Below, piece by piece: positions 3,029-60,720 of a stretch of DNA of 64,000 nucleotides. The DNA is taken from positions 142,529 to 206,528 of the IMG/VR virus record IMGVR_UViG_3300025364_000003; one strand, written 5' to 3'. The position numbers and the translations under genes are program-made. Below the pieces are notes generated by a model that had not been told where the DNA came from, did not search any database, and worked only from the letters and a program-made list of their open reading frames with translations. Positions within the stretch are counted from its first letter, which is position 1, and each line of letters begins with the position of its first letter.

Positions 3029-4496
3029 ATTTTACAAAGCCTGAACTTGTCATAAGGAGCATAATAGCTTTGCCGGCGAGCATTATACCACCGATGCTGC
3101 TAATTGCAGGAACTTTTTGAACCTTTTCTTGTTTGAGCCTCTCGCTAAAGTTTGCGAACACCTTTTTAAAGAAATGTTCAATTTCTTCATCGTTAATGGG
3201 TGCCGTTGTGAATTCCTCACAAAAATATTTTAATTCATTAACTAAATTTACTGTACCATAATGAAGCATTGTTTTGATCTGTCTCAAAGCAATATCAATT
3301 TTAACTCTTTGTTCATCATTTTTTGTAGATGATAAATTTGGCAAGTGAACCAAAACAGAATTTGATACCAGTGAACGGAGTCGTTTGTCAAACAACTCTT
3401 GCACTTCTTCGTGCAAAAAATAATTCTGCCTTTTTTGAAGGATAGATTGAGCTTGGGAAGCAACTGCTGCTCTCGTGCTTCCGTTTTCGATTGTGCATTC
3501 GTTCGAATCTAATCTCACTCGTTCTACCAAGGGCAGTTCATCATATTTTGTAAAAACAACAAGGTCACCTTTCATGGATGAAACAGGTAAAGAACCACAA
3601 ACTACCGCAATATCATTGACAATGTTTAGCGAATCAATATCGGAAGGCACTCGCACAGGTTGCACGTCAAGTAATCCTCGCTCCTGGTTTGCTTTTAAAG
3701 TTGCGACGACCTCTTCAGAAAAACCATGAGCAATTATTACCATTGGTATTTTTGTTTCCAAACACTTTGTTAGTAGATGATCGATTTCTGAAACTTTCTC
3801 GACTAATCCATCTACAACTAAAAGCTTACAATTACGGCGTTCCCAGGTATTTTTTTCGAGCATAAATTTGAATGGCTTCAATTGAAAAGTGTAGCCTTCT
3901 TTTAGTTCAATAAAAAAGTTATCTTGCCGACCATTTTCTACGAAAATGCGACCTTCAAGACCAGCAAGATTTAAAGCTTCCCAAATGGCTTGAGCCAGAA
4001 CTTTGTCGGACCCGCAAATTTTATCAACAACATCACGAATGTTGTTAGGGCTAGGAATCGAGGAGTTTTTTTCAACCTGATTTTTAAATTGATCTACAAC
4101 TTTATCGAATTGCTGTAGCAAAATTTGGGCATTGGTTTTTTCCATTGAAGTTTTGATCATTTCATTGACAAGCGTCACTCCGAACAAATAAGCTATATTC
4201 GCTCCACCGGCCGAAAGAAGTTCAGACTGGTAACATGACTTGAAAAGTGTAGAAGCCAATGCACGGGTTGTTCTGTCCGCTGGAGCGAGCTTTTTAAGAA
4301 GCTTTCCAATGAAATGGTAGCTGTCCTTTTCAAGAGGGTACAAGTCTTCATGGAGAATTAAATTTATTTTTGAGTATAACGAATCAATATTGTTGATTCC
4401 TGAAAATAACTCTCTGTGAACTTGTTCCTGTGGAATAAATGTGGTTGCTGTCTTCATATTTAATAAATGTAAACTCTTTAGAGTAGAAGGTATCAA
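3015..4496 (-). CDS. groEL: Divergent GroEL/Cpn60-like chaperonin
   Basis: ALNLAGLEGRIFVENG..IELKEGYTF, KIPMVIIAHGFSEEVVATLKANQERGLLDVQPVRVP and IVNDIAVVCGS align with GroEL intermediate/apical segments. GDGTTT motif not present. Start codon uncertain (4496 or 4457). Confidence 0.8.
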   Translation of the reverse strand: MIPSTLKSLHLLNMKTATTFIPQEQVHRELFSGINNIDSLYSKINLILHEDLYPLEKDSYHFIGKLLKKLAPADRTTRALASTLFKSCYQSELLSAGGANIAYLFGVTLVNEMIKTSMEKTNAQILLQQFDKVVDQFKNQVEKNSSIPSPNNIRDVVDKICGSDKVLAQAIWEALNLAGLEGRIFVENGRQDNFFIELKEGYTFQLKPFKFMLEKNTWERRNCKLLVVDGLVEKVSEIDHLLTKCLETKIPMVIIAHGFSEEVVATLKANQERGLLDVQPVRVPSDIDSLNIVNDIAVVCGSLPVSSMKGDLVVFTKYDELPLVERVRLDSNECTIENGSTRAAVASQAQSILQKRQNYFLHEEVQELFDKRLRSLVSNSVLVHLPNLSSTKNDEQRVKIDIALRQIKTMLHYGTVNLVNELKYFCEEFTTAPINDEEIEHFFKKVFANFSERLKQEKVQKVPAISSIGGIMLAGKAIMLLMTSSGFVKFTGP

Positions 4497-36857: not shown

Positions 36858-39800
36858 ATGGTTAGCCAAATTTTTAACTTTCCAGGCTTCTTCGATAGAG
36901 AAATCGATCTAACAGCCCAGATTCAGGAGCCAGTAGGCGTTCCAGCTGGTGTAATTGGTGGTGCCGAACGTGGTCCGGCATTCGTCCCATTCACTGTTGG
37001 ATCATTTGCTGATTTCCGAACTCGCTTCGGCGATCTAAATCCAAGATATGCTGCGCCATACGCAGTCGATAGATTCCTGGAAAACAGGACAGCACTTACC
37101 TTCATCAGAATTCTTGGTGCGGGTGCCAATGAGACGTCAAGTGATATCGAGACAACTCGTTTGCAAGGAACAGTCAAAAATGCTGGATTCCGTCTAAGTG
37201 GAACTCTCAGTTCCGTTAACCCAGCTACTACTAATGGTGCTGTTCAATTCCTCGTCGCTCGCCACGTTGTTACTGCTTCAGAAGCACTCGGAATGCCGAT
37301 GTTTTCTGACAATAATTCACTTCTTACCTCGGGTTCGAACGACGAGGTTTACCTTACTCGTGGTGTTATTTTCGCTGCGTCAGGTACTCGAATTCAAATT
37401 CTAAATGGAGATGACAGCAACGAGCAGTACAGCAGCTTTGTTGATGACGTTGCAACTGTAAACTCTGCAAGCAGAGAATTCAAAATTGTTATTTCTTCAT
37501 CGGCTGGTGCGTCGTTTGGCAATGACGACGGATTCCCTGGCGTTAGAATTCTAACCGCTTCTCTGAATCCAAGTTCTGATAACTACTTTGCCAAGCTGAT
37601 GAATACTGATCCAGAAAGGTTCAGCGACGAAAAACATGTGGTCTATGCTGATTATGCAGTCGATGCCGAACTCGCAAATGTTGGCACTGGAAGCGGCGAT
37701 GTTGCTATTGCAAGCGGTAGCATTAACACTTCTTCTACTTCTGGCAACACCTCTCTTCCATTCCTAGAGGCGTTCGGTCGTTTTGACACCAGATTCACAA
37801 CTCCAAAAACACCTTGGTTTATCTCGCAACCATATGGCAAAACTGAGTATGACCTCTTTTACATTGAAGCTGTTGATGATGGCGCATACGCAAATCAGCG
37901 TTTCAAGATTTCTATCACCAATCTTCTCAAGTCTTCAAATGTTCGTGATAAACACGGAACTTTCACACTTGTTGTAAGAACATTTGATGATACAGATGCC
38001 GAACCACAGATTCTTGAGCAGTTCAACAACCTTTCTCTTGATCCGGATTCGGACAACTACATTGCTAAGGTTATTGGAGATAAGCGTGCTCGCTTCAACT
38101 TTGACGCTGAAGCTGAAGAAGATCGTCGCCTTCTCACCACTGGCAAGTTTGAAAACAGAAGCCGATACATTCGAGTATTTGTTTCTGACCAGGTAGCACA
38201 AAAGAAGATTCCTGAAGATGCTGTTCCATTCGGCTTCCGAGGAACTGCTCCATTGAGCACCAACTCACTTCTTTCTGATACTGCTGGGTCGGCGGCCCTA
38301 GCAAGACTTGCTTTGTCGGGTGCAACTGATCCACGTCTTGCGTGGTCTATAGTACCTCCTCTTCCATACCGTTATAAGGTAACAAGAGGAAATGCAGCAA
38401 CCAATCCGGGTTTCGAAGGTGCTCCAGGAGCAACCGAATTAACTGATGCACGTTATTTTTGGGGGGTCAAGACTTCTAGAAACACCAACGCACTGAATCC
38501 AAACATTGTCAATCTTCCAAACCAGTTGGTCAACAGCTACACTAAGTTTGCAGGTATTGAAAAACTTGATGTACTTGTTACAGGTTCAGCTAAAGATGAT
38601 TTCAACAACAATAAGTTTACGCTTGCTCGTGTTGCGCTAGGAAATGCATCACTCAATGATGTTACATCATCAGCCGCAATCCACATGAAAGAAGCTGCTT
38701 ATCTTCGTAACAGAACGCCAGATGGGTTCGAATACAAGATAACTGATGAAATTTCTGGTCTGGATAGAATTACATTTGCCACCCTTTACCAAAAGGGCAC
38801 GTCTGCTGCCGACTTCAACAAGTTCACCAACTTTGCAAAGTTTACCTCTATTCTATATGGTGGTTTCGATGGCGTCAACATTCTTGATAAGAATGCAGCT
38901 ACATTTAATGACCGTTCCACTTCAACAGAAACTGCTGGAAGCGAGGTTGGAAATGCAGCATCTACTTTCACTTCACCTGGACTTAACGAGAACGTAAACG
39001 GATTTGGTACTTCAAACCAGACTGTTTTCGCTTATCGAAGAGCTTCAGAGATTATCACTGATGCAATCGCATCTAACATCAATCTGCTTACTATTCCAGG
39101 TCAGCGTGATCCGTTGGTCACAGACTTTGCTGCTGATGAAGTTCGTGACTTTGGTCTTGCTTTCTATGCCATGGATTTACCAGCATATGACTCTGATGGT
39201 AACAGAATTTGGGACAATCAAACTTCAAGATTTATCGACATCGAACAGACTGCAAATAACTTTGAGCAGCGTGCTCTTGACAATGAGTTTGCAGGTGCTT
39301 ACTTCCCAGATTTCGTACTTGAGGATGATGTAAACAGGCGCAGAGTAACCGTTCCAGCTTCTGTTGGAGCACTTGCAGCACTTGGATTCAATGACCGTGT
39401 TGCTTATCCTTGGTTCGCACCAGCAGGCTTCAACAGAGCAGCTCTTGATTTTGTACAGCTTACAAAGACAAGAATTAAGCAACCAGAACGTGAACGTCTT
39501 TTTGACATTCACATTAACCCAATCGTCAAATTCCCTGGCGAATCTGGTTTCGTAATCTTCGCACAAAACACGCTTGAACAAGCCGAGTCTGCGCTCGGCA
39601 GTATCAATGTTGTTCGAATGTTGAATGAACTCAAGCGCAGGATAATCGAGATTGGCAACCGAGCAATCTTCGAACAGATTACTCCGGAAATTTACACTGA
39701 ACTTGATAGGAGATTCCGCAGCGTTCTTAACCTCATTTCGGCTCGTGCTGGTATTGAGAGATTTGATGTCATCGTTGATGGCAGAAACAATACAAACCTT

Positions 39801-39917
39801 GATCGTGAGAACAATAGAGTCAATGCTCGAATTGTGCTCGTTCCAACGAGGGCGGTTGAGTTCATTGCAATTGACTTCATCATTACTAGAAGCGGCGTGT
39901 CGTTCGATGCCGTATAA
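36858..39917 (+). CDS. gp18: Contractile tail sheath protein 1
   Basis: FPGFFDREIDL, GAERGPAFVP, WFAPAGFNR, INPIVKFPG..VIFAQ.TL, INVVRML, PTRAVEFIAIDF. Confidence 0.92.
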   Translation: MVSQIFNFPGFFDREIDLTAQIQEPVGVPAGVIGGAERGPAFVPFTVGSFADFRTRFGDLNPRYAAPYAVDRFLENRTALTFIRILGAGANETSSDIETTRLQGTVKNAGFRLSGTLSSVNPATTNGAVQFLVARHVVTASEALGMPMFSDNNSLLTSGSNDEVYLTRGVIFAASGTRIQILNGDDSNEQYSSFVDDVATVNSASREFKIVISSSAGASFGNDDGFPGVRILTASLNPSSDNYFAKLMNTDPERFSDEKHVVYADYAVDAELANVGTGSGDVAIASGSINTSSTSGNTSLPFLEAFGRFDTRFTTPKTPWFISQPYGKTEYDLFYIEAVDDGAYANQRFKISITNLLKSSNVRDKHGTFTLVVRTFDDTDAEPQILEQFNNLSLDPDSDNYIAKVIGDKRARFNFDAEAEEDRRLLTTGKFENRSRYIRVFVSDQVAQKKIPEDAVPFGFRGTAPLSTNSLLSDTAGSAALARLALSGATDPRLAWSIVPPLPYRYKVTRGNAATNPGFEGAPGATELTDARYFWGVKTSRNTNALNPNIVNLPNQLVNSYTKFAGIEKLDVLVTGSAKDDFNNNKFTLARVALGNASLNDVTSSAAIHMKEAAYLRNRTPDGFEYKITDEISGLDRITFATLYQKGTSAADFNKFTNFAKFTSILYGGFDGVNILDKNAATFNDRSTSTETAGSEVGNAASTFTSPGLNENVNGFGTSNQTVFAYRRASEIITDAIASNINLLTIPGQRDPLVTDFAADEVRDFGLAFYAMDLPAYDSDGNRIWDNQTSRFIDIEQTANNFEQRALDNEFAGAYFPDFVLEDDVNRRRVTVPASVGALAALGFNDRVAYPWFAPAGFNRAALDFVQLTKTRIKQPERERLFDIHINPIVKFPGESGFVIFAQNTLEQAESALGSINVVRMLNELKRRIIEIGNRAIFEQITPEIYTELDRRFRSVLNLISARAGIERFDVIVDGRNNTNLDRENNRVNARIVLVPTRAVEFIAIDFIITRSGVSFDAV

Positions 39918-39973
39918 GATGAGCCAGGCAAATAGTTACATAGAAAGATTAGTCGACTAATCGGAGAGAATTC

Positions 39974-42900
39974 ATGACTCAAATTAATTTCAAAAGTGCA
40001 GGAGTTTCAGCCAGGGTTATCAACCTTACTGGCCCAACAGCAATTCAACCTGTTGGAATCCCAGCTGGTGTGATCGGAACTGCTGTAAAGGGACCTGCAT
40101 TTGTTCCTGTAACTTTTGCAACAACGCAGGACTTTACGGTTGTATTCGGACTTCCAGAAGACAACAAGGCAAATGGACCACTTGCTGTGGGCGAGTGGCT
40201 TCGTAATAGACAAGCAGCAACTTACCTTAGGGTTCTTGGTGCTGGTCAAGCCAAGAGAAGAGAACAATCTGGAGAGAATCAGGGTAAAGTTCAGGGTGCA
40301 GGTTTTGTTGTTGGTGACGAACAGCCACAAGCTGGTGGAGCATTGGATAACAACATGTACGCCAATGAAGGGGGACCTCTAGGGCGTTTGTATTTCCTAA
40401 ACACCTTTATGTCAGAAGCAAACGGTTCGGGTTTTCTTACTGACGCTGGTCTCCCTGGTGAGGGAACGCCAATCGTTAGGGCAGTTCTTTTAGCTGCTTC
40501 CGGTGTTATCATCACCCTTTCTTCGTCACTTTCTGCATCGACAATGGTTCCAGGAGCAGCTCCAGCGTCAAACCTTGTTGCCACAGAAGAAAATAAGAGC
40601 GGTTCATTCCTAGGCTCCGTCAACCTCTCCGGCGGCAGACAGGAATTTGTGATGTTCTTGAATGGTCACAAGGGAACTGATCCTCTATTTCCCAATGTCA
40701 TTACTGCATCTTTTGATGTTGACGCACCAAATTACCTTGGCAGTGCCCTTAACACCGATCCTTTCAACCTTGAAAAGGCAGGTTACTTGCTTTATGCCGA
40801 TTACTCGGTTCATCCAAACCTTGCAACCGTTACTGGTTCTTCTGTGGTCGATACCACTACTGATGAAGTTGTAGGTGGAGGTTTGGCAGCTGGATTTGAA
40901 CCAATCGCATTCTTGGCAACTGGTTCATTGTCTCGAAACTCCGGCTCAACCGTAGTACCAAGTTATGAAAACTGGGAAGATAGATACACTACGCCAAAAT
41001 CACCTTGGATTGTTTCACAGAGGCTTGGCGGCAAGCCAAGAAATCTCTTCAGAATTCATCTTTTGGATGACGGTGCTTGGGGCAACGATCAGGTCAAATG
41101 GTCTGTTGAAAACATTGTTCCGGCAATCAATGATGTAAACCCTTATGGAACTTTCGACCTTCTCATCCGTCGTTTCAACGACATCGATAAGAAACGTGAG
41201 GCAACTGAGGCTTGGAGAGGGCTTTCACTCAATCCAAGCTCCGACAATTACATTGCTAGAGTGATTGGTGACCTCAACACCTTCTACAACTTTGATGCTG
41301 CCGAAGGTAACCAGAAGATTCAAACTACTGGCGAGTATCCAAACCAGTCCAAGGTTATCAGAGTAGAAGTCTCGCCAGACGTTGAAAACGTTGAGTTGGA
41401 TGCTTCGGCTCTTCCGCTTGGTTTCAGAGGAATTCCACACTTGGTAACCTCGGGAACTGCACCATTGGCTCCATTAGGCGAAGCACTTGCAGACAGCGTT
41501 CTTATTACTGGCTCTTCTGATCCAGCTCACAATGTCGTACAGATGCCAGTTCAGTTCCGCAGAAGCCTTAACCTTGGTTCGGTTACCAGCCGTCGTGTAG
41601 ACAAGGGCCTCTATTGGGGTATTCAGTTTACTCGTCAGCTTTCAGTTGAAGAGCCAAACTCAACAACCGAGCCAGAAAGAACTATTGCCAACTTCACCAA
41701 GTTCTTCCCTAAGCATCAGACTGATTGGTTGAATGTTGTCGTCAGCGACAATGAAGGAGTGGCAGATGCGGCAGAAACCGGTATTCTTGATGCGGATAGG
41801 TTCAATAACAACCTATTCTCTCTTGAGAACATCAGGATCGTAAGAGATCCGATCACGAATCTTGCTGACACTACCCAGCTTGTAAGTTGGAGTTATGTAA
41901 GAGCCGGAAACGTAGCTACCTCTGGTTCGGTTAGAGCATTGACAGCTGACGATTTGTCGGATTCATCTGTAAGGCAGGTTGCTAAGTTCAGCGGAATTAT
42001 CCAGGGCGGATTTGATGGTGTTAGAATCTTTGATGAAGACACTGCCAATCTTACCAACCTCGCAATTATCGAAGAAATGGACAACACAAACAGGGGAGTG
42101 TCGAATGGTCCTACCGTAAAGGCTTATGATACCGCTTTGGATATCATTGCCGACGACACCGAAACTGATATCCAACTTCTTACCATCCCAGGAATTAGAC
42201 ATCCACAGATCACCGATGACGCTCTACAGCTTATCGAGGAAAGATTTGATGCAATGTACATCATGGATCTTCCAGAGTATGACACCACAAATCAACTCGT
42301 TACTGCTTCCTCACAGGATTTGAGCGTTAGATTTACCGCAAATCAGCACCGTGATCGAGGTTTGAACACTTCCTTCGGAGCAGCTTACTTCCCAGACGTA
42401 ATCTTGAGGGATACACTCAACAACACTATTCGACAGGTTCCGCCTTCGGTTGCTGTTCTTGGTGCATTCGGTCTCAATGATGCAGTCGGATTCCCATGGT
42501 TTGCCCCAGCAGGTTTTGCACGTGGCGCCCTACAGACAACTGAAGAATCTACGCTTCCATTGTCCCGTGACAACATGGATGCGCTTCAAGATGTCAAGAT
42601 TAACCCACTTGTATCCTTTGCAGGATCGGATGGTGTTGTAGTCTGGGGTCAGCGTACTCTACTTGCTCGTGATTCTGCACTTGAGAGAGTCAATGTACGT
42701 AGACTTCTCATTCAACTTAGAAGAGATGTTCGCCGTGTTGCTCGACGCTTCGTATTCGAACCTGGTCGTGCCGAAACGCTTGCAAGATTTTCTCAGTTGG
42801 TAAACCCAATCTTGAAGAGGGTGCAGGACCAGAGAGGCGTGGAGAGATTCCTTGTAAGAATTGACACCACAACTACTACACAAGCCGACATTGAAAACAG

Positions 42901-43003
42901 AACGGTTCGTGGAAAGATTTTCCTTGTTCCAACCAGAACTTTGGAATTCTTGTCCATCGACTTCGTCGTTACCAATCAAGGCAATTTCGTTTCATCGCAA
43001 TAA
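39974..43003 (+). CDS. gp18: Contractile tail sheath protein 2
   Basis: SAGVSARVINL, GTAVKGPAFVP, WFAPAGFARG, INPLVSF..GVVVWGQRTL, VNVRRLL, PTRTLEFLSIDF. Confidence 0.92.
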   Translation: MTQINFKSAGVSARVINLTGPTAIQPVGIPAGVIGTAVKGPAFVPVTFATTQDFTVVFGLPEDNKANGPLAVGEWLRNRQAATYLRVLGAGQAKRREQSGENQGKVQGAGFVVGDEQPQAGGALDNNMYANEGGPLGRLYFLNTFMSEANGSGFLTDAGLPGEGTPIVRAVLLAASGVIITLSSSLSASTMVPGAAPASNLVATEENKSGSFLGSVNLSGGRQEFVMFLNGHKGTDPLFPNVITASFDVDAPNYLGSALNTDPFNLEKAGYLLYADYSVHPNLATVTGSSVVDTTTDEVVGGGLAAGFEPIAFLATGSLSRNSGSTVVPSYENWEDRYTTPKSPWIVSQRLGGKPRNLFRIHLLDDGAWGNDQVKWSVENIVPAINDVNPYGTFDLLIRRFNDIDKKREATEAWRGLSLNPSSDNYIARVIGDLNTFYNFDAAEGNQKIQTTGEYPNQSKVIRVEVSPDVENVELDASALPLGFRGIPHLVTSGTAPLAPLGEALADSVLITGSSDPAHNVVQMPVQFRRSLNLGSVTSRRVDKGLYWGIQFTRQLSVEEPNSTTEPERTIANFTKFFPKHQTDWLNVVVSDNEGVADAAETGILDADRFNNNLFSLENIRIVRDPITNLADTTQLVSWSYVRAGNVATSGSVRALTADDLSDSSVRQVAKFSGIIQGGFDGVRIFDEDTANLTNLAIIEEMDNTNRGVSNGPTVKAYDTALDIIADDTETDIQLLTIPGIRHPQITDDALQLIEERFDAMYIMDLPEYDTTNQLVTASSQDLSVRFTANQHRDRGLNTSFGAAYFPDVILRDTLNNTIRQVPPSVAVLGAFGLNDAVGFPWFAPAGFARGALQTTEESTLPLSRDNMDALQDVKINPLVSFAGSDGVVVWGQRTLLARDSALERVNVRRLLIQLRRDVRRVARRFVFEPGRAETLARFSQLVNPILKRVQDQRGVERFLVRIDTTTTTQADIENRTVRGKIFLVPTRTLEFLSIDFVVTNQGNFVSSQ

Positions 43004-48538: not shown

Positions 48539-50461
48539 ATGAAGACTTTCACTTTAGAGCAACTCGCAGAAGGCGTACACCGTCGCTCGCTTGGTGCAGA
48601 CTCACCACGACTCGTAAAGAAGTGGGGAGCAACTGGTCTTCTTGAGGGCCTAAAAGGCATGAACCGAGATGGCATGGCACGTCTTCTTGAGAACCAGGCA
48701 GCTGAGCTTCTCAAGGAAACCAACGCTTTGTCCCTTGGTGGTGCTTCTTTGACCTCAAGCGGGAAGATTGCAGGTTTCACAAACGTTGCATTCCCAATCG
48801 TTCGCCGTGTTTTCGCAGGTTTGATTTCAAACGAGATCGTGTCGGTTCAGCCAATGAGCCTTCCAACCGGTCTTCTTTTCTACCTCGATTACACTTACGG
48901 CAGCTCGGTTGGTGGTGACGCAGGAACCGCAGCTAACCAGTTTGCAACAACTAGCGTTGTAGATCCATCAACTTACACCAGCCAGGATTCCGTATACAAC
49001 AACCCACGTGGTGTTGGCGTACGTTCTGGTTCTCTTGCAACCGGTGGACAGTATGACCTTGTAGGTCATGGTTACTCCAAGGTTCACAAGCAGAGCCGTT
49101 TCCTTTCTGGTTCAACCGACTCTGTTGGTTACTGGGCATCTGGCTCCATTTGGACCCCAGGTGGCACAGTAGACACCGCTGATGACTTCGAAGGTCTCAA
49201 CGCACGTTTCGTCATGTACGATACTCGTGTTGAAAACGACCTTACCGATGGCGTACTTGATTACTGCTTCGTGTTTGTCAGCGCATCTGAGTTTACCGAC
49301 AAGATCAACGGTGCTGACCTCAACAACCTCAACCAGATTGCACTCACCGGTTTCGGTGCAGCAACCAACTCTGCTGTTGAGTGGGGAGAGAAGTATCAAG
49401 GTGGTCGAGGCGTGCTTAACCTTCGTCAGATGAACCAGCGTGGTAACTGGAACTCAGCAACTGGTATCTTCACACCAGATCCGCTTAACGGTTCACACGT
49501 GCTTCACGTAGTTCGTCTTGCAAATGCAGGTACCGCACCAGCACCTGATGGAGCTGTCGGTAATGCAGTAACTGCTTCGGCAGCTATCGCAGACGCACTC
49601 AGCGTAAACTCTGACGGTTCAACTCTTACGATTCCAAGCTTCGAGTCTGACTTCGCAGTCGACGCAAGCCCACGTATCCCAGAGGTTGACATCCGCATTG
49701 AGTCCACCAGCGTTACGGCACAAACCCGTAAGCTCAGGGCTCGTTGGTCGCCAGAAATGGCTCAGGATCTCACAGCATTCTACTCAATCGATGTAGAAGT
49801 TGAGCTTACAAACATTCTCTCCGAGATGATTACGCTTGACATTGACCGTGAAATCTTGAACGACCTTCTCACCCAGGCAGGAGCAGCAAACCTCTACTGG
49901 TCCCGAGCACCAGGTAAGCTTGTCAACAAGTTCACCGGCGCAGAGGCTCTCCAGAGCAGCACGCTTTCTCCAGGCCCAATGGCATTCGTAAACATTCAAG
50001 AGTGGTACCAGACCCTCCTTGAGACTGTTACGGACGCAGCAAACACCATTCACCGTAAGACACTCCGTGGTTCCGGTAACTTCATTGTTACTTCCCCAGA
50101 TGTCTGCACCATCCTTGAGCACCTTGTTGCCTACAAGCCTTCCTACAGAGTAGATGCTGACGGTCAGGTTCGTGACAACATGGTAATCGGAGCAGAGGCA
50201 GTTGGTACTTTGAACAACCGTTACACGGTCTACAAAGACCCATATTTCCCAAGCAACAAGCTCTTGATCGGATTGAAGGGTAACACCTTCCTTGAGTCAG
50301 GATTCATCTACGCACCATACGTGCCACTTATCCTTACTCCAGTTATCTACGCTCAGGAAGACTTTACTCCACGTAAGGGCGTCATGACCCGATACGGTAA
50401 GAAGATGGTCAGAAATGACTTCTACGCAACCGTAACTGTTCTTGACATGGGTATAATTTAA
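48539..50461 (+). CDS. gp23: Major capsid protein, T4 gp23-like
   Basis: KKWGATGLLEGL, FPIVRRVF, SVQPMSLPTGLLFYLD, TRKLRARWSPE.AQDL, EITLDIDREIL, YAPYVPL, FTPRKGVMTRYGK. Confidence 0.96.
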   Translation: MKTFTLEQLAEGVHRRSLGADSPRLVKKWGATGLLEGLKGMNRDGMARLLENQAAELLKETNALSLGGASLTSSGKIAGFTNVAFPIVRRVFAGLISNEIVSVQPMSLPTGLLFYLDYTYGSSVGGDAGTAANQFATTSVVDPSTYTSQDSVYNNPRGVGVRSGSLATGGQYDLVGHGYSKVHKQSRFLSGSTDSVGYWASGSIWTPGGTVDTADDFEGLNARFVMYDTRVENDLTDGVLDYCFVFVSASEFTDKINGADLNNLNQIALTGFGAATNSAVEWGEKYQGGRGVLNLRQMNQRGNWNSATGIFTPDPLNGSHVLHVVRLANAGTAPAPDGAVGNAVTASAAIADALSVNSDGSTLTIPSFESDFAVDASPRIPEVDIRIESTSVTAQTRKLRARWSPEMAQDLTAFYSIDVEVELTNILSEMITLDIDREILNDLLTQAGAANLYWSRAPGKLVNKFTGAEALQSSTLSPGPMAFVNIQEWYQTLLETVTDAANTIHRKTLRGSGNFIVTSPDVCTILEHLVAYKPSYRVDADGQVRDNMVIGAEAVGTLNNRYTVYKDPYFPSNKLLIGLKGNTFLESGFIYAPYVPLILTPVIYAQEDFTPRKGVMTRYGKKMVRNDFYATVTVLDMGII

Positions 50462-50491
50462 ATTATTCCTGCCCTCGCCGGCAAAAAAACG

Positions 50492-50521
50492 AAAAAGCGA
50501 CCACTTGTTGGTCGCTTTTTT
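50492..50521 (+). terminator. Intrinsic terminator after the capsid gene
   Basis: AAAAAGCGACCA-CTTGT-TGGTCGCTTTTTT. Confidence 0.85.
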
Positions 50522-50571
50522 CTTTTAAAATTCCCTTGTGTTTTCAAGGCCCACCCGCTATTTTTGATATT

Positions 50572-50608
50572 GTTACTGTGTTAGATATGGGGGTATATAT
50601 CCTGCCCT
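50572..50608 (+). repeat. Diverged second copy of the capsid-gene 3' end
   Basis: GTTACTGTGTTAGATATGGGG encodes VTVLDMG, as does 50432-50452; TCCTGCCCT follows both copies. Confidence 0.6.
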
Positions 50609-50645
50609 ATGCGCCCTATTCTATAGTATAGAGTGGAAGGCAGTA

Positions 50646-51539
50646 ATGAAAATATTTTTACACGGATATGCAAATAAGCGTGGTATTTATAAAATTACTA
50701 ATACAAAAAATGGACGTTATTATTATGGATCCGCTTCTCGTTTAAAAGAACGAGCTTATTCTCATCGGGACGATTTGCGCAGAAATAGGCATGCGAATTT
50801 GTTTTTACAAAGAGATTATAACAAATGTGGCGAAGATGCATTTATATTTGAAGCAATAGAAACAGTAGATGGAGCCAGGGAAGAACAACTCGCTAAAGAA
50901 CAGGCTTACCTTGATAAATTTTTTGATGGAGGAAACGAATGTTACAACCTTTGTCCAAAAGCAGAAAGTAGAGAAGGTAGCAAAAATGTTCGTCCATTTA
51001 ACCCAGAAACAGACGGGCGAGTAACATCACGAACGCCAGAAGTGTGTGCTATTGTAAGCAAGAAAAACAAAAAGACGTGGAACACACCAAAGAAAAAAGA
51101 AGAAGCTCTCAAGAACGCTCAAAAGCGTTGGGATAACCATTCTGCTGATGTAACCGTCACCAATAAAAAGACTGGTGAAACTGTTACCATTGAAGGTTCT
51201 GTCAGGTCTTGGTGCCAAGAAAGAAATCTCTCTTATAAGTCATTTCATTTAATGCTCAAAGGCAAGACTAAATCTTCAGGCGGTTGGTTTCTTGGCACGG
51301 AAGAACCGACTTACGTGGAACGCAAGGGTGAAAAAAGAAAACCTTTGTCGGATGAACATAGAGCCAAGATAGCGGGTGGTAAATATGCTGGTGTTGTCTT
51401 GAAGAACAAGGTGTCTGGTGAGATGTTTGTGGTTGGTGAGAATGCCAAAGCTGATTGCCGTGAGCGTGGCATTTCATATTCAAGCTTTGCAAAAATGATG
51501 AGTGGTAAGTGTAAAAGTGCTTCTGGTTGGATAGTCTAA
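50646..51539 (+). CDS. Free-standing GIY-YIG homing endonuclease
   Basis: GIYKITNTKNGRYYYGSA..R, HAN..LQRDYNK.GEDAF, EQAYLD, YNL; two C-terminal SYxSF..M..GK.KS..GW repeats. Confidence 0.9.
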   Translation: MKIFLHGYANKRGIYKITNTKNGRYYYGSASRLKERAYSHRDDLRRNRHANLFLQRDYNKCGEDAFIFEAIETVDGAREEQLAKEQAYLDKFFDGGNECYNLCPKAESREGSKNVRPFNPETDGRVTSRTPEVCAIVSKKNKKTWNTPKKKEEALKNAQKRWDNHSADVTVTNKKTGETVTIEGSVRSWCQERNLSYKSFHLMLKGKTKSSGGWFLGTEEPTYVERKGEKRKPLSDEHRAKIAGGKYAGVVLKNKVSGEMFVVGENAKADCRERGISYSSFAKMMSGKCKSASGWIV

Positions 51540-53528: not shown

Positions 53529-53798
53529 CTATTTCTTTTCTATTCTAAAAACCAGTGGTCTCTTGCAATTTGGACCTTTAATAACCCTGTGCCATGTCTT
53601 GGATTTAATAAACAATGTTCCTTCCATTAGCTTGGGTATTTCATTGTCGTATTGGAACCACCAGTCATCAGCTTGCATTACTTCAACAATTCGGTCTTCT
53701 TTATCTCGGTGCCAAACCAACTCTTCCGAATCGACATTTGGGTCGAACTCACGGATTACAACATTAGTTGATAACGTCTTTTCTTTGAACGGAAACAT
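53529..53798 (-). CDS. Small cupin-like conserved phage protein
   Basis: ELVWHRDKEDRIVEV...WHRVIKG; TAATG-coupled start at 53798. Confidence 0.7.
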   Translation of the reverse strand: MFPFKEKTLSTNVVIREFDPNVDSEELVWHRDKEDRIVEVMQADDWWFQYDNEIPKLMEGTLFIKSKTWHRVIKGPNCKRPLVFRIEKK

Positions 53799-54403
53799 TA
53801 CCACCAACGATACGATTTAGATGCGCCTGTCAATGACGGATAACGACCAATTCTACATGACCAGTAACCTGCGGTACAACGATCGTTTTTATCCTCACAA
53901 TTGTGTCTAGCGGCAAAAGATTTTCGGCGTTCAGGATCTGATACTTTCACACTCATATCTGGTGAACCAAAGGAGATTTTCTTGACTTTATCCCCGCATT
54001 TTTGATAAACATAAAACTTTTTGGATCCACCACGCTTTGGTTTGCCAAGTTCAACATCTTTTCCTTGATACTCGGCCTCATCAAGCATTTCGCTTCCTTC
54101 GATCATCGGAATGCCGAGAGGAACTTTTTTGTTTTCGTAGATGGCAAACTCACCAACGCCTTGTTCGATCAATTCTTTTTCTTGTTCAGAGAGTTGAATT
54201 TTGCCTTCGGTGTAAAGTTCTTTCATTTCCCTCATTAGGGAAAAGAACGCTTTCGACTTTACACGATAAATGTTGTCATAAAAACTGATACCATTTTCAA
54301 GATGAAATCGCATTCCCTCTGACAAGACACGCCCATACTTGTTCTTTTCAATCTCTTCTTTGACAAGCTTGTTAATTTCTTCTTCCAGTGTTTGTTTTGC
54401 CAC
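53798..54403 (-). CDS. Conserved phage protein with leader helix
   Basis: LEEEINKLVKEEIE; KKFYVY..VKKISFG...ERRKSFAARHNC...AGYWSCR. Confidence 0.7.
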   Translation of the reverse strand: MAKQTLEEEINKLVKEEIEKNKYGRVLSEGMRFHLENGISFYDNIYRVKSKAFFSLMREMKELYTEGKIQLSEQEKELIEQGVGEFAIYENKKVPLGIPMIEGSEMLDEAEYQGKDVELGKPKRGGSKKFYVYQKCGDKVKKISFGSPDMSVKVSDPERRKSFAARHNCEDKNDRCTAGYWSCRIGRYPSLTGASKSYRWW

Positions 54404-55702: not shown

Positions 55703-56548
55703 ATGAGCAATAAACTAAGATGGAAAAAATTAGCAGGACTTCTTACTGAAGGATATGAAGATCGCTGGCCTTCCCGTGAAGACGAAGAAGAAGAATTGGC
55801 CGATCTAAAATCAAAAGCAGAACCAAGACTTCCTCGAACTGTTGTTGTTGATGATGAAGAATATATTGGTGGTCGTCGGGCACCAGCCTGGATGCGTTCG
55901 GACTACGATCCAAAGAGTGATTCATATGCTTTTGATCTTGACTACAACCCGTATAAAGAATTAGATGAGCAAGTTGACATGGTTGCAGATATGAATGCGC
56001 CAGTTGAACCAGTAATTTCTGGACTTGCTCCTATCTCAAGTTTGGAGCAACAAAGAGATGATGTCAGAGATGAAATCGATGATGTCAAGAACTGGCTCGC
56101 TGGATACGTTTCTTATCTTAGAGCAATTCATCTTTGGTTTCACGCAGCTCATCATCTTACCAAAGGCACTGGATTCGCTGGTGACCATGAAGACCTTTAT
56201 GGAAGGATATATACTGAAGTCCAAGATGAGATTGATGGCGCCATAGAAAAAGCTGTCGGTGTTACCAACGATGAATTGCTTGCTTGCCCTCTGATGATTA
56301 CAAGCAACGCTGTTGAAATAATGGAAGAAGCAGGTTGTAAGGTAAGCGACAGTGCTCACAATATCGCAAAAGCCGGACTTCGTCTTGAAAAAGCTTATAT
56401 AAAATTTGTTGAGGAAATGTTTGCAACTTTGGAAGAAATGGATGCCATGACGCTTGGTTTGAATGATCAACTTGCATCATCAGCCAACACTCACGAGACG
56501 TATGTTTATCTTCTTCAGCAAAGAGTTAAGGATAGCAAAAAATTGTGA
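55703..56548 (+). CDS. Dps/ferritin-like domain protein with RWKKLAGL leader
   Basis: HLWFHAAHHLTKGTGFAGDHEDLYGRIY...IDGAIEK...HETYVYLL. Confidence 0.7.
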   Translation: MSNKLRWKKLAGLLTEGYEDRWPSREDEEEELADLKSKAEPRLPRTVVVDDEEYIGGRRAPAWMRSDYDPKSDSYAFDLDYNPYKELDEQVDMVADMNAPVEPVISGLAPISSLEQQRDDVRDEIDDVKNWLAGYVSYLRAIHLWFHAAHHLTKGTGFAGDHEDLYGRIYTEVQDEIDGAIEKAVGVTNDELLACPLMITSNAVEIMEEAGCKVSDSAHNIAKAGLRLEKAYIKFVEEMFATLEEMDAMTLGLNDQLASSANTHETYVYLLQQRVKDSKKL

Positions 56549-57624: not shown

Positions 57625-58470
57625 GTGTTTAAGTGCCCTTTGTGCAAAAACCAATATGAAAAACTTATTTCTTTGTCTGTCCATTACAGAAAAGGGCACA
57701 AGAAAAAGTCAAAAGATTTAATTGTTGACTTGTATTACAATGGCAGAGAGCCCACGTGTGCTTGTGGTTGTGGCGGGGAAGTAAAATTTCTTGATATAAC
57801 TCGTGGGTTTCGTGAATTTATTCATGGACACGCAGCACGCATACCAGAAAAAAATAATTTTGTTTCAAACAAAGCCCAACAAAACAGCGCTAAAACACGT
57901 AAAAAGATGATTGAAAGTGGAGGCTGGAAACCATTTCACCTAAAAGAAACTAGTGAACATTGGGGCAAAGGTTTATCAAAAGAAACCGACGACCGCATAG
58001 CCAAAATGGCTAACTCCATTAAAACAAATAAAGTTGAAATTGAAAAACGTTCAAAACGTATGCGCAAAGGACGTTTAGATGGAACAATACCGACACTTCA
58101 CAAAGAGAACCATAGCCAATGGAAAGGTGGTATCAGCCCACTAAATCAATATTGTCGTAGTAGTATTAAACTTTATTCAAATTGGAAATATCCTTTGCTT
58201 AAAGCGGCAAAATTTCAATGTGTCATGTGTAAAAAACCTGGTCCTGGCTTGGAAATACATCACAACAAAGAAACAATGTCTTCCATAATTCGTAAATTTG
58301 CTAAAAAATTTAAATGGGATCATTATTACAACAGCAATGCACCAGCAAATGATCAAAATTTGATTAATATCAAAGATCAAATTGCAGAAGCCGTTGCTGA
58401 CTACCACATTCAAAACAATGTGTCCGGCGTTGTCCTGTGTTCCAAATGTCACAGTAAAGAACATAACTAA
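57625..58470 (+). CDS. Free-standing HNH-type homing endonuclease with N-terminal zinc finger
   Basis: CPLC..HYRKGH, CACGCG..FIHGHA, SQWKGG, CVMC...EIHHNKE...VVLCSKCHSKEH. Confidence 0.8.
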   Translation: MFKCPLCKNQYEKLISLSVHYRKGHKKKSKDLIVDLYYNGREPTCACGCGGEVKFLDITRGFREFIHGHAARIPEKNNFVSNKAQQNSAKTRKKMIESGGWKPFHLKETSEHWGKGLSKETDDRIAKMANSIKTNKVEIEKRSKRMRKGRLDGTIPTLHKENHSQWKGGISPLNQYCRSSIKLYSNWKYPLLKAAKFQCVMCKKPGPGLEIHHNKETMSSIIRKFAKKFKWDHYYNSNAPANDQNLINIKDQIAEAVADYHIQNNVSGVVLCSKCHSKEHN

Positions 58471-58874: not shown

Positions 58875-58903
58875 GCCATACTCATAGTATGGCTTTTTCT
58901 TTT
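58875..58903 (+). terminator. Probable intrinsic terminator
   Basis: GCCATAC-TCATA-GTATGGC followed by TTTTTCTTTT. Confidence 0.6.
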
Positions 58904-58925: not shown

Positions 58926-59317
58926 ATGTTTAGTTCTGAAGGTGTGCTCAAGTATTTCATAATTGACGAAAGCAATTATAAGCTAACGCTTTTGGTCGAT
59001 ACGGAGATTGCTCGTTATTATCGTAATTTCGTTCCAAAGTCTCAGAAGTGTCGGCCTGGTCGTTATGCACCTCATATTACAGTTGTTAGAAATGAACGAC
59101 CTTTGAATATGAAAAAGTGGGGCTTGTATGAGAACAAAGTGATTAGCTTTGAGTATGAACCCTACATTTGGTATGATGAAACTTATTGGTGGCTTAATTG
59201 CCACTCTTCCTTCTTGAAAAAACAAGAGAAGAACTTGGATTACCAAAATGGGCAAAGTGGAACATGCCTCCAAGTGGAAAAGCTTGTTTTCATATGACAA
59301 TAGGCAATTCAAAATAG
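58926..59317 (+). pseudogene. 2H-phosphoesterase-family protein split by a -1 frameshift at A6 (59217-59222)
   Basis: First motif APHITVV; the -1 frame continues TREELGLP...CFHMTIGNSK*, supplying the second HxT. Confidence 0.7.
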
Positions 59318-59360
59318 GAACAACCATTCAGTATCCGCTAGTTAAGCTTATAGGATTATC

Positions 59361-59573
59361 GTGGCCAAAATCTTAAAAGAGCGATGGATGAAATTGGCTG
59401 GCTTACTCAAGGAAGCTGATGATTTGGAAATTGATATACAGGATTCAGATGATTCATCTTCTGAGTGGCAGAGAGACAAAAAACGCTCTGATGAAGAAGA
59501 GCCTGGTTGGGATCCTGCTGATGAAGATGAATGGCTTGCAGAAGAATTAGGTTCTTGGCATTCGGAAGGTTGA
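59361..59573 (+). CDS. Small acidic protein with RWMKLAGL leader
   Basis: MAKILKERWMKLAGLLKE followed by a D/E-rich tail. Confidence 0.7.
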   Translation: MAKILKERWMKLAGLLKEADDLEIDIQDSDDSSSEWQRDKKRSDEEEPGWDPADEDEWLAEELGSWHSEG

Positions 59574-59574
59574 T

Positions 59575-60033
59575 ATGAATAAAATAAACAAAAACAGATG
59601 GCAACAGCTCGCTGGACTCAAGGAGTCTTCTGTAGGAACAGAAGAAAGAGAACGGCTTAATGAAGGTTTTATGAATCTTGGAATGGCAAGTCCAGCACCA
59701 ATGGGTAATCCATTCGGCAATCGTCCTAAACAACCGGAATACAATTTTGAGGGAATTTTAGAAGAGATGGCTCCAGAATTGGATCCTGATAAAATTGAAG
59801 TTGAGCCTGATGAAGACCACGAGGGTTCTATGGCCAGAGGTCAACTTGAAAAAATCCGCAAATATTCCAAAGAATTGCTTTTAAAGCTTCCAGAAGATGC
59901 GCAACTTGAAGCTTGGGTGCAAAGCAAGCTTACTCTCGCAGCAGAAATGATGGACGTTGTAGCACACTATCTTCAAGATGAAGCTGGCGATGATCAGGAT
60001 GATGAGCACGGCCTCGAAAAAGATGTCAAATAA
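59575..60033 (+). CDS. Conserved phage protein with RWQQLAGL leader
   Basis: MNKINKNRWQQLAGLKE; DHEGSMARGQL...EAWVQSKLTLA. Confidence 0.7.
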   Translation: MNKINKNRWQQLAGLKESSVGTEERERLNEGFMNLGMASPAPMGNPFGNRPKQPEYNFEGILEEMAPELDPDKIEVEPDEDHEGSMARGQLEKIRKYSKELLLKLPEDAQLEAWVQSKLTLAAEMMDVVAHYLQDEAGDDQDDEHGLEKDVK

Positions 60034-60720
60034 AATAATAAAAGAGAGATGGCAGCGGCTTGCTGGTATTGTTAAAGAATCGTCTTATCACATGGCCAAA
60101 CATGACCATGTTGCAAGTGTTGTTAATAAACATGTGGCTGGCCTAATCAAAGACCTTGAGCTTGATCCAGTAGATGCCCCAGAAGTCTTCGATGATCTTA
60201 CTCATAACATTAAACGATATCTCTCTTCCGTACTAGGAGAATCAACATCTTCGATAGCTGAAAGAACATCACCTGAAGCGGCCCAGGACGTCGCTGCTTA
60301 CTTTGGAACTAATGATTCGGTAGATGGGCCATATAAAAAAGTTTCGGCTTTACAGCCCTTCCAAGACGCCAAACATCGTAAGAAATTTTTAAAAGCCATA
60401 CATGCAGAAGGTGCCTTGGGGAAAGCAAGTATCCGGAGACTGCATCGGAATATGCCGAGCTTCTTAACAAGCAGTCAAAAGGACCATTTAAACTAGTTGT
60501 CGATCCTTCTCATTGGGAACAATATGACGTAAGAACCGGTGAAGATTTAGCAAAATATTTGGCAATTGAGACTTATAGGGATGTATACAAGGATGTTTAC
60601 GGAATTCGTCCTCGGCGTAGTCTGGAAGACAAGTCTGTTGAAGAGATCGAAGCTATGATTGATTCTTTGTCGGAAGATTTTGAAGAAGACGACGATTCAT
60701 GGCTGCGCAATATAGACTAA
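60023..60720 (+). pseudogene. Leader-bearing protein split by a -1 frameshift at G4 (60418-60421)
   Basis: MSNKIIKERWQRLAGIVKE...AEGALG; continues in the -1 frame as GESKYPETASEYAELL...VVDPSHWEQY...YKDVYGIRPR...D/E tail to TAA 60720. Confidence 0.65.

Follow-up and report, generated by a model that had tools for sequence, protein, structure and literature searches.

A predicted 2H phosphoesterase gene split by a frameshift in a huge phage, and its intact virus-only relatives

Several described enzymes bear comparison with the gene reported here. T4 Acb1 (gene 57B; Pfam PF23474) is an anti-CBASS nuclease, a small phage 2H enzyme with two catalytic histidines. In the structure of Acb1 from Erwinia phage FBB1, residues 145–152 form a lid that closes over the ligand, and one His-to-Ala change inactivates the enzyme (PMC9117128). 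Fungal SAK proteins are 857–956-aa multi-domain proteins with RNA ligase, kinase and phosphatase parts, and a further group is made up of LigT/ThpR, archaeal 2'-5' RNA ligase, CNPase and the fungal Trl1-type CPDases. For jumbo phages, it was proposed earlier that 2H enzymes clear 2',3'-cyclic ends for RNA ligases (PMC7824862).

Here we analyze a locus of a hypersaline-lake huge phage in which the two HxT motifs of such a protein lie in different reading frames. On balance, we think it probable that the locus is a recently frameshift-broken copy of a stand-alone 2H protein of ~130 aa that is found only in viruses, that the intact relatives of this protein heal RNA ends, and that in this phage the function has been lost or is kept by slippage only. 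The family has more than 540 members, nearly all viral and many on contigs of 200–540 kb, none of which has been characterised. The locus would then be an accessory gene seen very soon after the loss of one base, in a ~460-kb phage whose population is clonal, and it illustrates that small split ORFs in huge-phage assemblies can conceal recognisable enzymes.

Gene layout and the missing base

The window, by which we mean the whole stretch of DNA analyzed, forms the 64-kb end of an IMG/VR record of 206 kb (GC 42.5%), itself part of a phage genome of ~461 kb. Within the window are genes for a T4-type major capsid protein, a tail tube, two paralogous tail sheaths and homing-endonuclease-like proteins. 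The capsid protein is closest to those of uncultured huge phages and Flavobacterium phages (~45–48% identity), a kinship that makes a Bacteroidota host possible. Homology to Gp23 in this 640-aa protein (48539–51539 region) falls mainly in residues 357–630, in two pieces, so the protein may have a large additional region, either N-terminal or inserted. Directly behind the capsid gene lies one for a GIY-YIG homing endonuclease (50646–51539). The tail-sheath paralogs are arranged in tandem at 36858–43003 and encode ~1,010–1,020 aa each.

The surroundings of the 2H gene are partly shared with relatives. The upstream tail-tube protein is 97% identical to that of the nearest related locus (L005), which also keeps the three genes downstream, an array of consecutive small acidic genes (59361–60496; 70, 152 and 157 aa) that have the N-terminal motif ERWxxLAGLxKE in common; PHROGs returned nothing informative for the first two of these (70 and 152 aa). 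Between the tail-tube and 2H genes lies a 281-aa ORF (57625–58470) with a zinc-finger-like N-terminus and weak matches to HNH endonucleases. Two related loci, L005 and L007, have other genes at this position, so the ORF may be a mobile insertion. A paralogous relationship between it and the 281-aa ORF at 55703 was rejected on comparison. A terminator-like hairpin, which ends 23 nt 5' of the 2H start codon, is a putative terminator that would close the preceding gene (Table 1).

Table 1. Features of the split 2H locus and of related loci. Positions are those of the window, or of the related locus where one is named.
Feature	Position	Strand	Basis or remark
Terminator-like hairpin, 8 bp, 3-nt loop, T-rich tail	58875..58903	+	consensus scan
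N-terminal part of 2H gene, 99 codons, frame 0	58926..59222	+	translation, gap-free alignment, profile match, PHROG 12204
First HxT motif (H-I-T)	59073-59081	+	frame 0, within APHITVVR; H50 is 59073-59075
Interval with one base missing relative to intact homologs	59214..59224	+	holds the A6 run 59217-59222 and the preceding TTG/GAA junction
C-terminal part of 2H gene, 31 codons and stop, -1 frame	59222..59317	+	stop 59315-59317
Out-of-frame tail of annotated ORF	59223..59297	+	24 unrelated residues and TGA at 59295-59297
Second HxT motif (H-M-T)	59291-59299	+	-1 frame, His at 59291-59293
CCA-adding enzyme and 2H gene pairs	L025 3670-5393; L060 3478-5393; L033 3760-5402		overlap 4 nt (L025, L060), longer (L033)
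Cargo-domain genes near 2H loci	L005 8052-9056; L007 1530-2876, 7036-9753, 9833-10411		

The annotated ORF (58926–59297, with its ATG at 58926) encodes 123 aa with a single HxT motif. Its homology to relatives ends in ...FLKK at the A6 run, and translation of the out-of-frame tail that follows contains no HxT motif. The -1 frame, open from 59198, reads ...EKTREELGLP...CFHMTIGNSK and then reaches a stop. The two motifs are in different frames and not on one polypeptide, so that the ORF as it stands lacks the paired motifs of a 2H protein. When the 123-aa ORF was used in a word search, nine intact relatives (123–140 aa) came up in which both motifs lie in one frame, and in an alignment with these nine homologs the two pieces of the window abut without a gap (FLKK/TREEL against FLERVREEL in P0002). 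The closest of them is P0002: its N-terminal part is 65% identical, and it agrees with the -1 frame of the window at 28 of 30 residues. The family profile, searched against the phage record, matches the N-terminal piece with an E-value of 1.1e-43 (profile positions 3–106) and the C-terminal piece with 4.7e-12 (positions 99–133), scores that place both pieces far beyond chance. In a structural model of the 123-aa ORF, mean pLDDT dropped to 70, 46 and 66 in the last three blocks of 10 residues, where the out-of-frame tail lies.

One base added between ~59214 and 59224 restores the frame, and an A added to the run gives a protein of 130 aa, which is the family length. The spacing from WWL to REEL is 29 nt in the window against 30 nt in the homologs. 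The codons at the site allow more than one position for the lost base: the -1 frame reads GAA AAA ACA AGA (E K T R) where L005 has GAA AGA GTT AGA (E R V R), and L007 has GAG CAG GTC at the shift site. Repair by an A in the run produces FLKKTREEL, whereas repair at the TTG/GAA junction produces FLEKTREEL. Since the -1 frame already reads EKTR, the missing base could equally lie at that junction, which would fit at least as well as the A-run, and the break cannot be pinned to the latter. Runs of A6 or longer are common in any case, with 250 on the + strand of the 206-kb record, and a screen of the genome for ORF pairs split at homopolymers returned 41 candidates that are mostly apparently ordinary gene boundaries.

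The original prediction had recognised both HxT motifs within 58926–59317, and translation of frames 0 and -1 bears it out; its proposal that a single-base frameshift splits the gene, and that both motifs are recovered in ~130 aa, is confirmed by the intact relatives. It had also held that an extra A in the A6 run restores the frame. The extra A does so, but A6 as the mutated site does not follow, as the TTG/GAA junction fits equally.

A viral family of minimal 2H proteins

We modelled P0002, the closest intact homolog, as a stand-in for the repaired protein and used this model in structure searches. The AlphaFold2 model, built with 78 relatives, had a pLDDT of 96.6 and a pTM of 0.88, and each HxT motif lies on a central strand. 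In a VIA-align search of 48,161 PDB chains, the top 21 matches were all 2H enzymes (Z 6.2–3.4), with unrelated folds at Z of 3.3 or below. The top six were, in order, CNPase, Acb1, MHV ns2, the phage BCSR5 PDE, drCPDase and 2'-5' RNA ligase, and Z was 6.2 for CNPase, 5.7 for phage Acb1, 5.6 for MHV ns2 and 5.5 for the Burkholderia phage phosphodiesterase (9q2y). Others among the 21 were Usb1, YjcG, ThpR, rotavirus VP3, plant CPDase, AKAP18, poxvirus cGAMP PDE and ASCC1. A second structure search gave 2H enzymes as 26 of its 26 top matches, down to Z 3.2, and Foldseek against the PDB returned nothing below an E-value of 0.2, although three of its weak rows were 2H enzymes; it took the exhaustive VIA-align comparison to reveal the fold. 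Although the Z-scores are of middling size and Acb1 (5.7) cannot be told from CNPase (6.2) by them, the uniformity of the matches and their coverage (residues 15–132) make the 2H fold secure. The gene is predicted from this model to encode a 2H phosphoesterase-type protein, as had been proposed from the sequence. Within this fold the family is minimal: it has an extra N-terminal beta-hairpin (residues 1–17) and two helices, and it ends 7 residues past the second His.

Profile-based searching extended the family to 542 relatives, mostly of 125–145 aa; about 550 intact relatives of 123–145 aa have both parts of the gene on one protein. Members stand alone (113–202 aa), and both His and the second Thr occur without exception in the 78 relatives compared. 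ESM Atlas clusters of the family are 73–98% viral and have fungal SAK RNA-repair proteins among their structural neighbours, and a pattern scan of GTDB species genomes, which has limited sensitivity, detected no copy, so that no cellular copies were seen. PHROG 12204, a group of unknown function, matches the N-terminal piece of the window (E 1.8e-11), with the match stopping at ORF residue 105. It includes hypothetical proteins of the Klebsiella jumbo phages RaK2, K64-1 and Muenster (34–38% identity by tblastn); these copies are annotated intact and none is characterised, whereas the copy in the window is split. No DNA match to the locus was found in GenBank phages, no curated NCBIfam model matches the family, and a profile search of PDB sequences gave chance matches only.

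Two other members of the family are disrupted. One of them (L063, 4989–5252) is 5'-truncated, with the first ~47 residues missing. At the same locus, a flavoprotein-like ORF ends just upstream of the 2H remnant. The other (L049, 3468–5356) has a frameshift near profile position 35, and the adjacent CCA-adding enzyme gene is in three pieces; this fragmentation of a second gene means that the L049 assembly may simply be poor.

We compared the gene neighbourhoods of 53 other IMG/VR loci together with L005, L007 and L009, which clustering at 80% identity reduced to 40 non-redundant groups. In six of these, the 2H gene has a gene for a class II CCA-adding enzyme within 5 kb, and in three loci (L025, L033 and L060) that gene lies directly upstream with overlapping stop and start (Table 1). 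The 2H proteins of the six CCA-linked groups are 34–68% identical to each other. The overlap suggests translational coupling of a two-gene tRNA-end module, and its presence in several deeply diverged lineages makes a role in tRNA-end repair or counter-defence directly testable. The reverse link is weak, with a 2H gene beside the CCA-adding enzyme in 5 of 80 phage CCA-enzyme loci. Other immediate neighbours among the 40 groups include cREC (two loci), Thg1, Ro60/TROVE, NFACT-R and RNase T. Close to the 2H locus, related huge phages also encode proteins with domains that are unusual as phage cargo (Table 1), namely Volactin, isocitrate lyase/PEP mutase, major-vault-protein shoulder and glutamine synthetase.

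In the phage studied here, the neighbours of the 2H gene are uninformative on function. The 206-kb record holds no CCA-adding enzyme and no second 2H copy; it carries eight tRNA genes (record positions 4106–89257), among them Lys(UUU) and two for Arg. A further gene, at 53662–54159 of the record and likewise outside the window, has an RNA_ligase domain (PF09414) whose score of 28.2 bits is just over the cut-off.

The best Pfam match of the family is 2H-SAK (PF22547), which 60 of the 78 members match at E <0.01 (best 6.9e-8); 2_5_RNA_ligase2 is matched by 11 and LigT_PEase by 2. With this match, and with CCA-adding enzyme, cREC, Thg1, Ro60/TROVE and NFACT-R as neighbours, RNA-end repair fits better than an Acb1-like function. 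From these patterns we infer that healing of RNA or tRNA ends by the intact relatives is more likely than signal degradation. Of the two functions named in the original prediction, Acb1-like or RNA repair, it is the second that gains from the comparison.

An Acb1-like counter-defence nuclease, which would destroy the cyclic oligonucleotide signals of CBASS, type III CRISPR or similar systems, is nonetheless an alternative for the family as a whole, and one that we regard as unlikely. The two share a superfamily and a chemistry, 7t27 (Acb1) and 9q2y are among the tied top structural matches, and the family is virus-only, small, patchy and decaying in some lineages, as accessory counter-defence genes are. 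A specific kinship with Acb1, as originally suggested, was not supported. None of the 78 members matches Pfam Acb1 (PF23474) at E <0.01, a model that scores the control, T4 57B, at 2.7e-60. When the family was aligned to T4 Acb1 with hhalign, the probability was 40.6% and lobe 1 of the family was aligned to lobe 2 of Acb1, a cross-lobe pairing. The protein ends so soon after the second His that it has no C-terminal lid of the kind seen in the FBB1 enzyme, and its recurrent neighbours are tRNA and RNA-end enzymes. By these comparisons the family does not belong to Acb1.

State of the split gene

The same truncated ORF is found on at least 25 contigs (21 + 4) from five JGI samples, three ENA assemblies and Logan runs, the longest of which are ~461 kb; one catalogued protein, P0123, is this truncated ORF called from an upstream ATG. 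All copies that we fetched are 100% identical to the window across 3 kb. Logan contigs of three hypersaline lake metagenome runs span the site with word depths of 58, 16 and 8 and show no difference or gap. A microbial mat run (X6) contains a relative that is ~97% identical; it does not cover 59022–59346 and hence says nothing on the shift site. No RNA run that holds the stretch was found in a run search. The break is real DNA and not a sequence error.

The C-terminal part, although out of frame, shows no decay. All family-conserved residues are intact in both pieces, and the comparison of the C-terminal part with L005 gives 18 identical, 11 synonymous and 3 non-synonymous codons. Against L005, dN/dS is 0.03 for the 30 out-of-frame C-terminal codons (dS ~1.45), 0.14 for the N-terminal part and 0.03 for the tail tube. 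This lack of decay means that the break is either recent or bypassed by slippage; by our own rough estimate, it spans less than about 15% of the divergence of the lineage. The locus is most likely a young pseudogene, that is, a recent inactivating one-base deletion that has become fixed in a clonal population.

We propose the following sequence of events. With one base missing in the interval given in Table 1, ribosomes would leave the frame after residue 99 and make the 123-aa product, which has the first catalytic HxT only and should be inactive, since the 2H enzyme Acb1 already loses its activity when one His is changed to Ala. The intact relatives would open 2',3'-cyclic phosphate ends on RNA, probably on tRNA cut by host nucleases, and the opened ends could then be restored by a CCA-adding enzyme or an RNA ligase. 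This accessory function would have just been lost in the present phage lineage, or would be kept only through rare slippage. Several observations tell against this account: the neighbours that point to RNA repair occur in a minority of relatives and are not those of this phage, and the intact conserved residues and low dN/dS would also fit a gene that is still translated by slippage.

Continued function through recoding seems to us improbable, though it deserves to be set out. If ribosomes slipped by -1 on G AAA AAA C, through re-pairing of tRNA-Lys, or if RNA polymerase inserted an A on the A6 run, some full-length enzyme would be made beside the truncated N-terminal half. The undecayed C-terminal part is what such a mechanism would leave, the allele is fixed in every assembly, the A-run sits in the loop of a small hairpin with a second hairpin starting 10 nt downstream, and the phage encodes a tRNA-Lys(UUU). 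The population is clonal, however, and fixation of the allele therefore says little. The shift site is not conserved either: no relative shares it, the nearest (L005) has GAA AGA GTT in place of an A-run, and the 51 other full-length IMG/VR copies (the 53 loci minus L049 and L063) are single ORFs. The heptamer is prone to slippage but does not conform to the canonical X XXY YYZ, being slippery for the A-site Lys codon only, and the local RNA fold lacks significance, with a z of -1.9 and 10 of 200 shuffled sequences folding equally well. Six A residues are also short for efficient transcriptional slippage. A more elaborate form of recoding, in which the break is no loss because slippage tunes a small amount of full-length enzyme, and in which the clade and phage CCA-adding enzymes together heal tRNA ends that host defence nucleases have cut, strikes us as less probable again.

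Phase variation, with the A-run as a switch between phages that make the enzyme and phages that do not, is very unlikely. Replication slippage can add a base to an A6/A7 tract or remove one, and the gene is otherwise intact, yet known contingency loci have tracts much longer than six bases, and the A-run is not even established as the place of the missing base. The suggestion that the gene is phase-variable between A6 and A7 alleles found no support in the allele survey: as far as assembled contigs can tell, since these hide minority alleles, only A6 was seen, in every assembly, and no intact ("on") allele of the phage's gene was present in the at least 25 contigs or among ~15 billion catalogued proteins searched. 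A homopolymer sequencing or assembly error that masks an intact gene is scarcely credible: the break does lie at or beside an A6 run and the sample numbers of part of the JGI assemblies are low and early, but it is identical in different pipelines (JGI, k141-named ENA contigs and Logan), and length errors at a six-base run are very unlikely at a depth of up to 58 if the assemblies are short-read.

Comparison with described 2H enzymes

LigT/ThpR, archaeal 2'-5' RNA ligase, CNPase and the fungal Trl1-type CPDases have the same fold and motif geometry as the viral family, with structural matches at Z 6.2 (2xmi), 5.9 (1iuh), 5.4 (1vgj) and 4.9 (5ldj) and faint Pfam matches to PF13563 and PF02834. 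The viral family differs in being ~40–50 residues shorter, in having two helices where this group has four or more, and in sequence, identity being 7–16%.

Acb1 is likewise a small phage enzyme with two catalytic His, and 7t27 superposes on the P0002 model with an rmsd of 3.2 Å over 101 residues (Z 5.7). The structural alignment stops at residue 113 of the 140-residue 7t27 chain, and the viral family, which has the extra N-terminal beta-hairpin, is without the lid and some 30 residues of the Acb1 C-terminus.

With 2H-SAK the family has both HxT motifs in common, and Atlas models of fungal SAK proteins align to it at a TM-score of 0.60–0.64 by query. SAK proteins are large and multi-domain, whereas this family consists of stand-alone proteins of ~130 aa and is virus-only. 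Most of its members score under Pfam's gathering cut-off of 27 bits for 2H-SAK; among the nine nearest homologs, P0010 reaches 28.3 bits and the others 12–26, and neither of the window's two pieces has a Pfam match, PF22547 included. Pfam would put these proteins on the fringe of 2H-SAK, a domain of RNA repair, and the family is most likely an uncharacterised, virus-only clade of minimal stand-alone 2H proteins that is distinct from Acb1.
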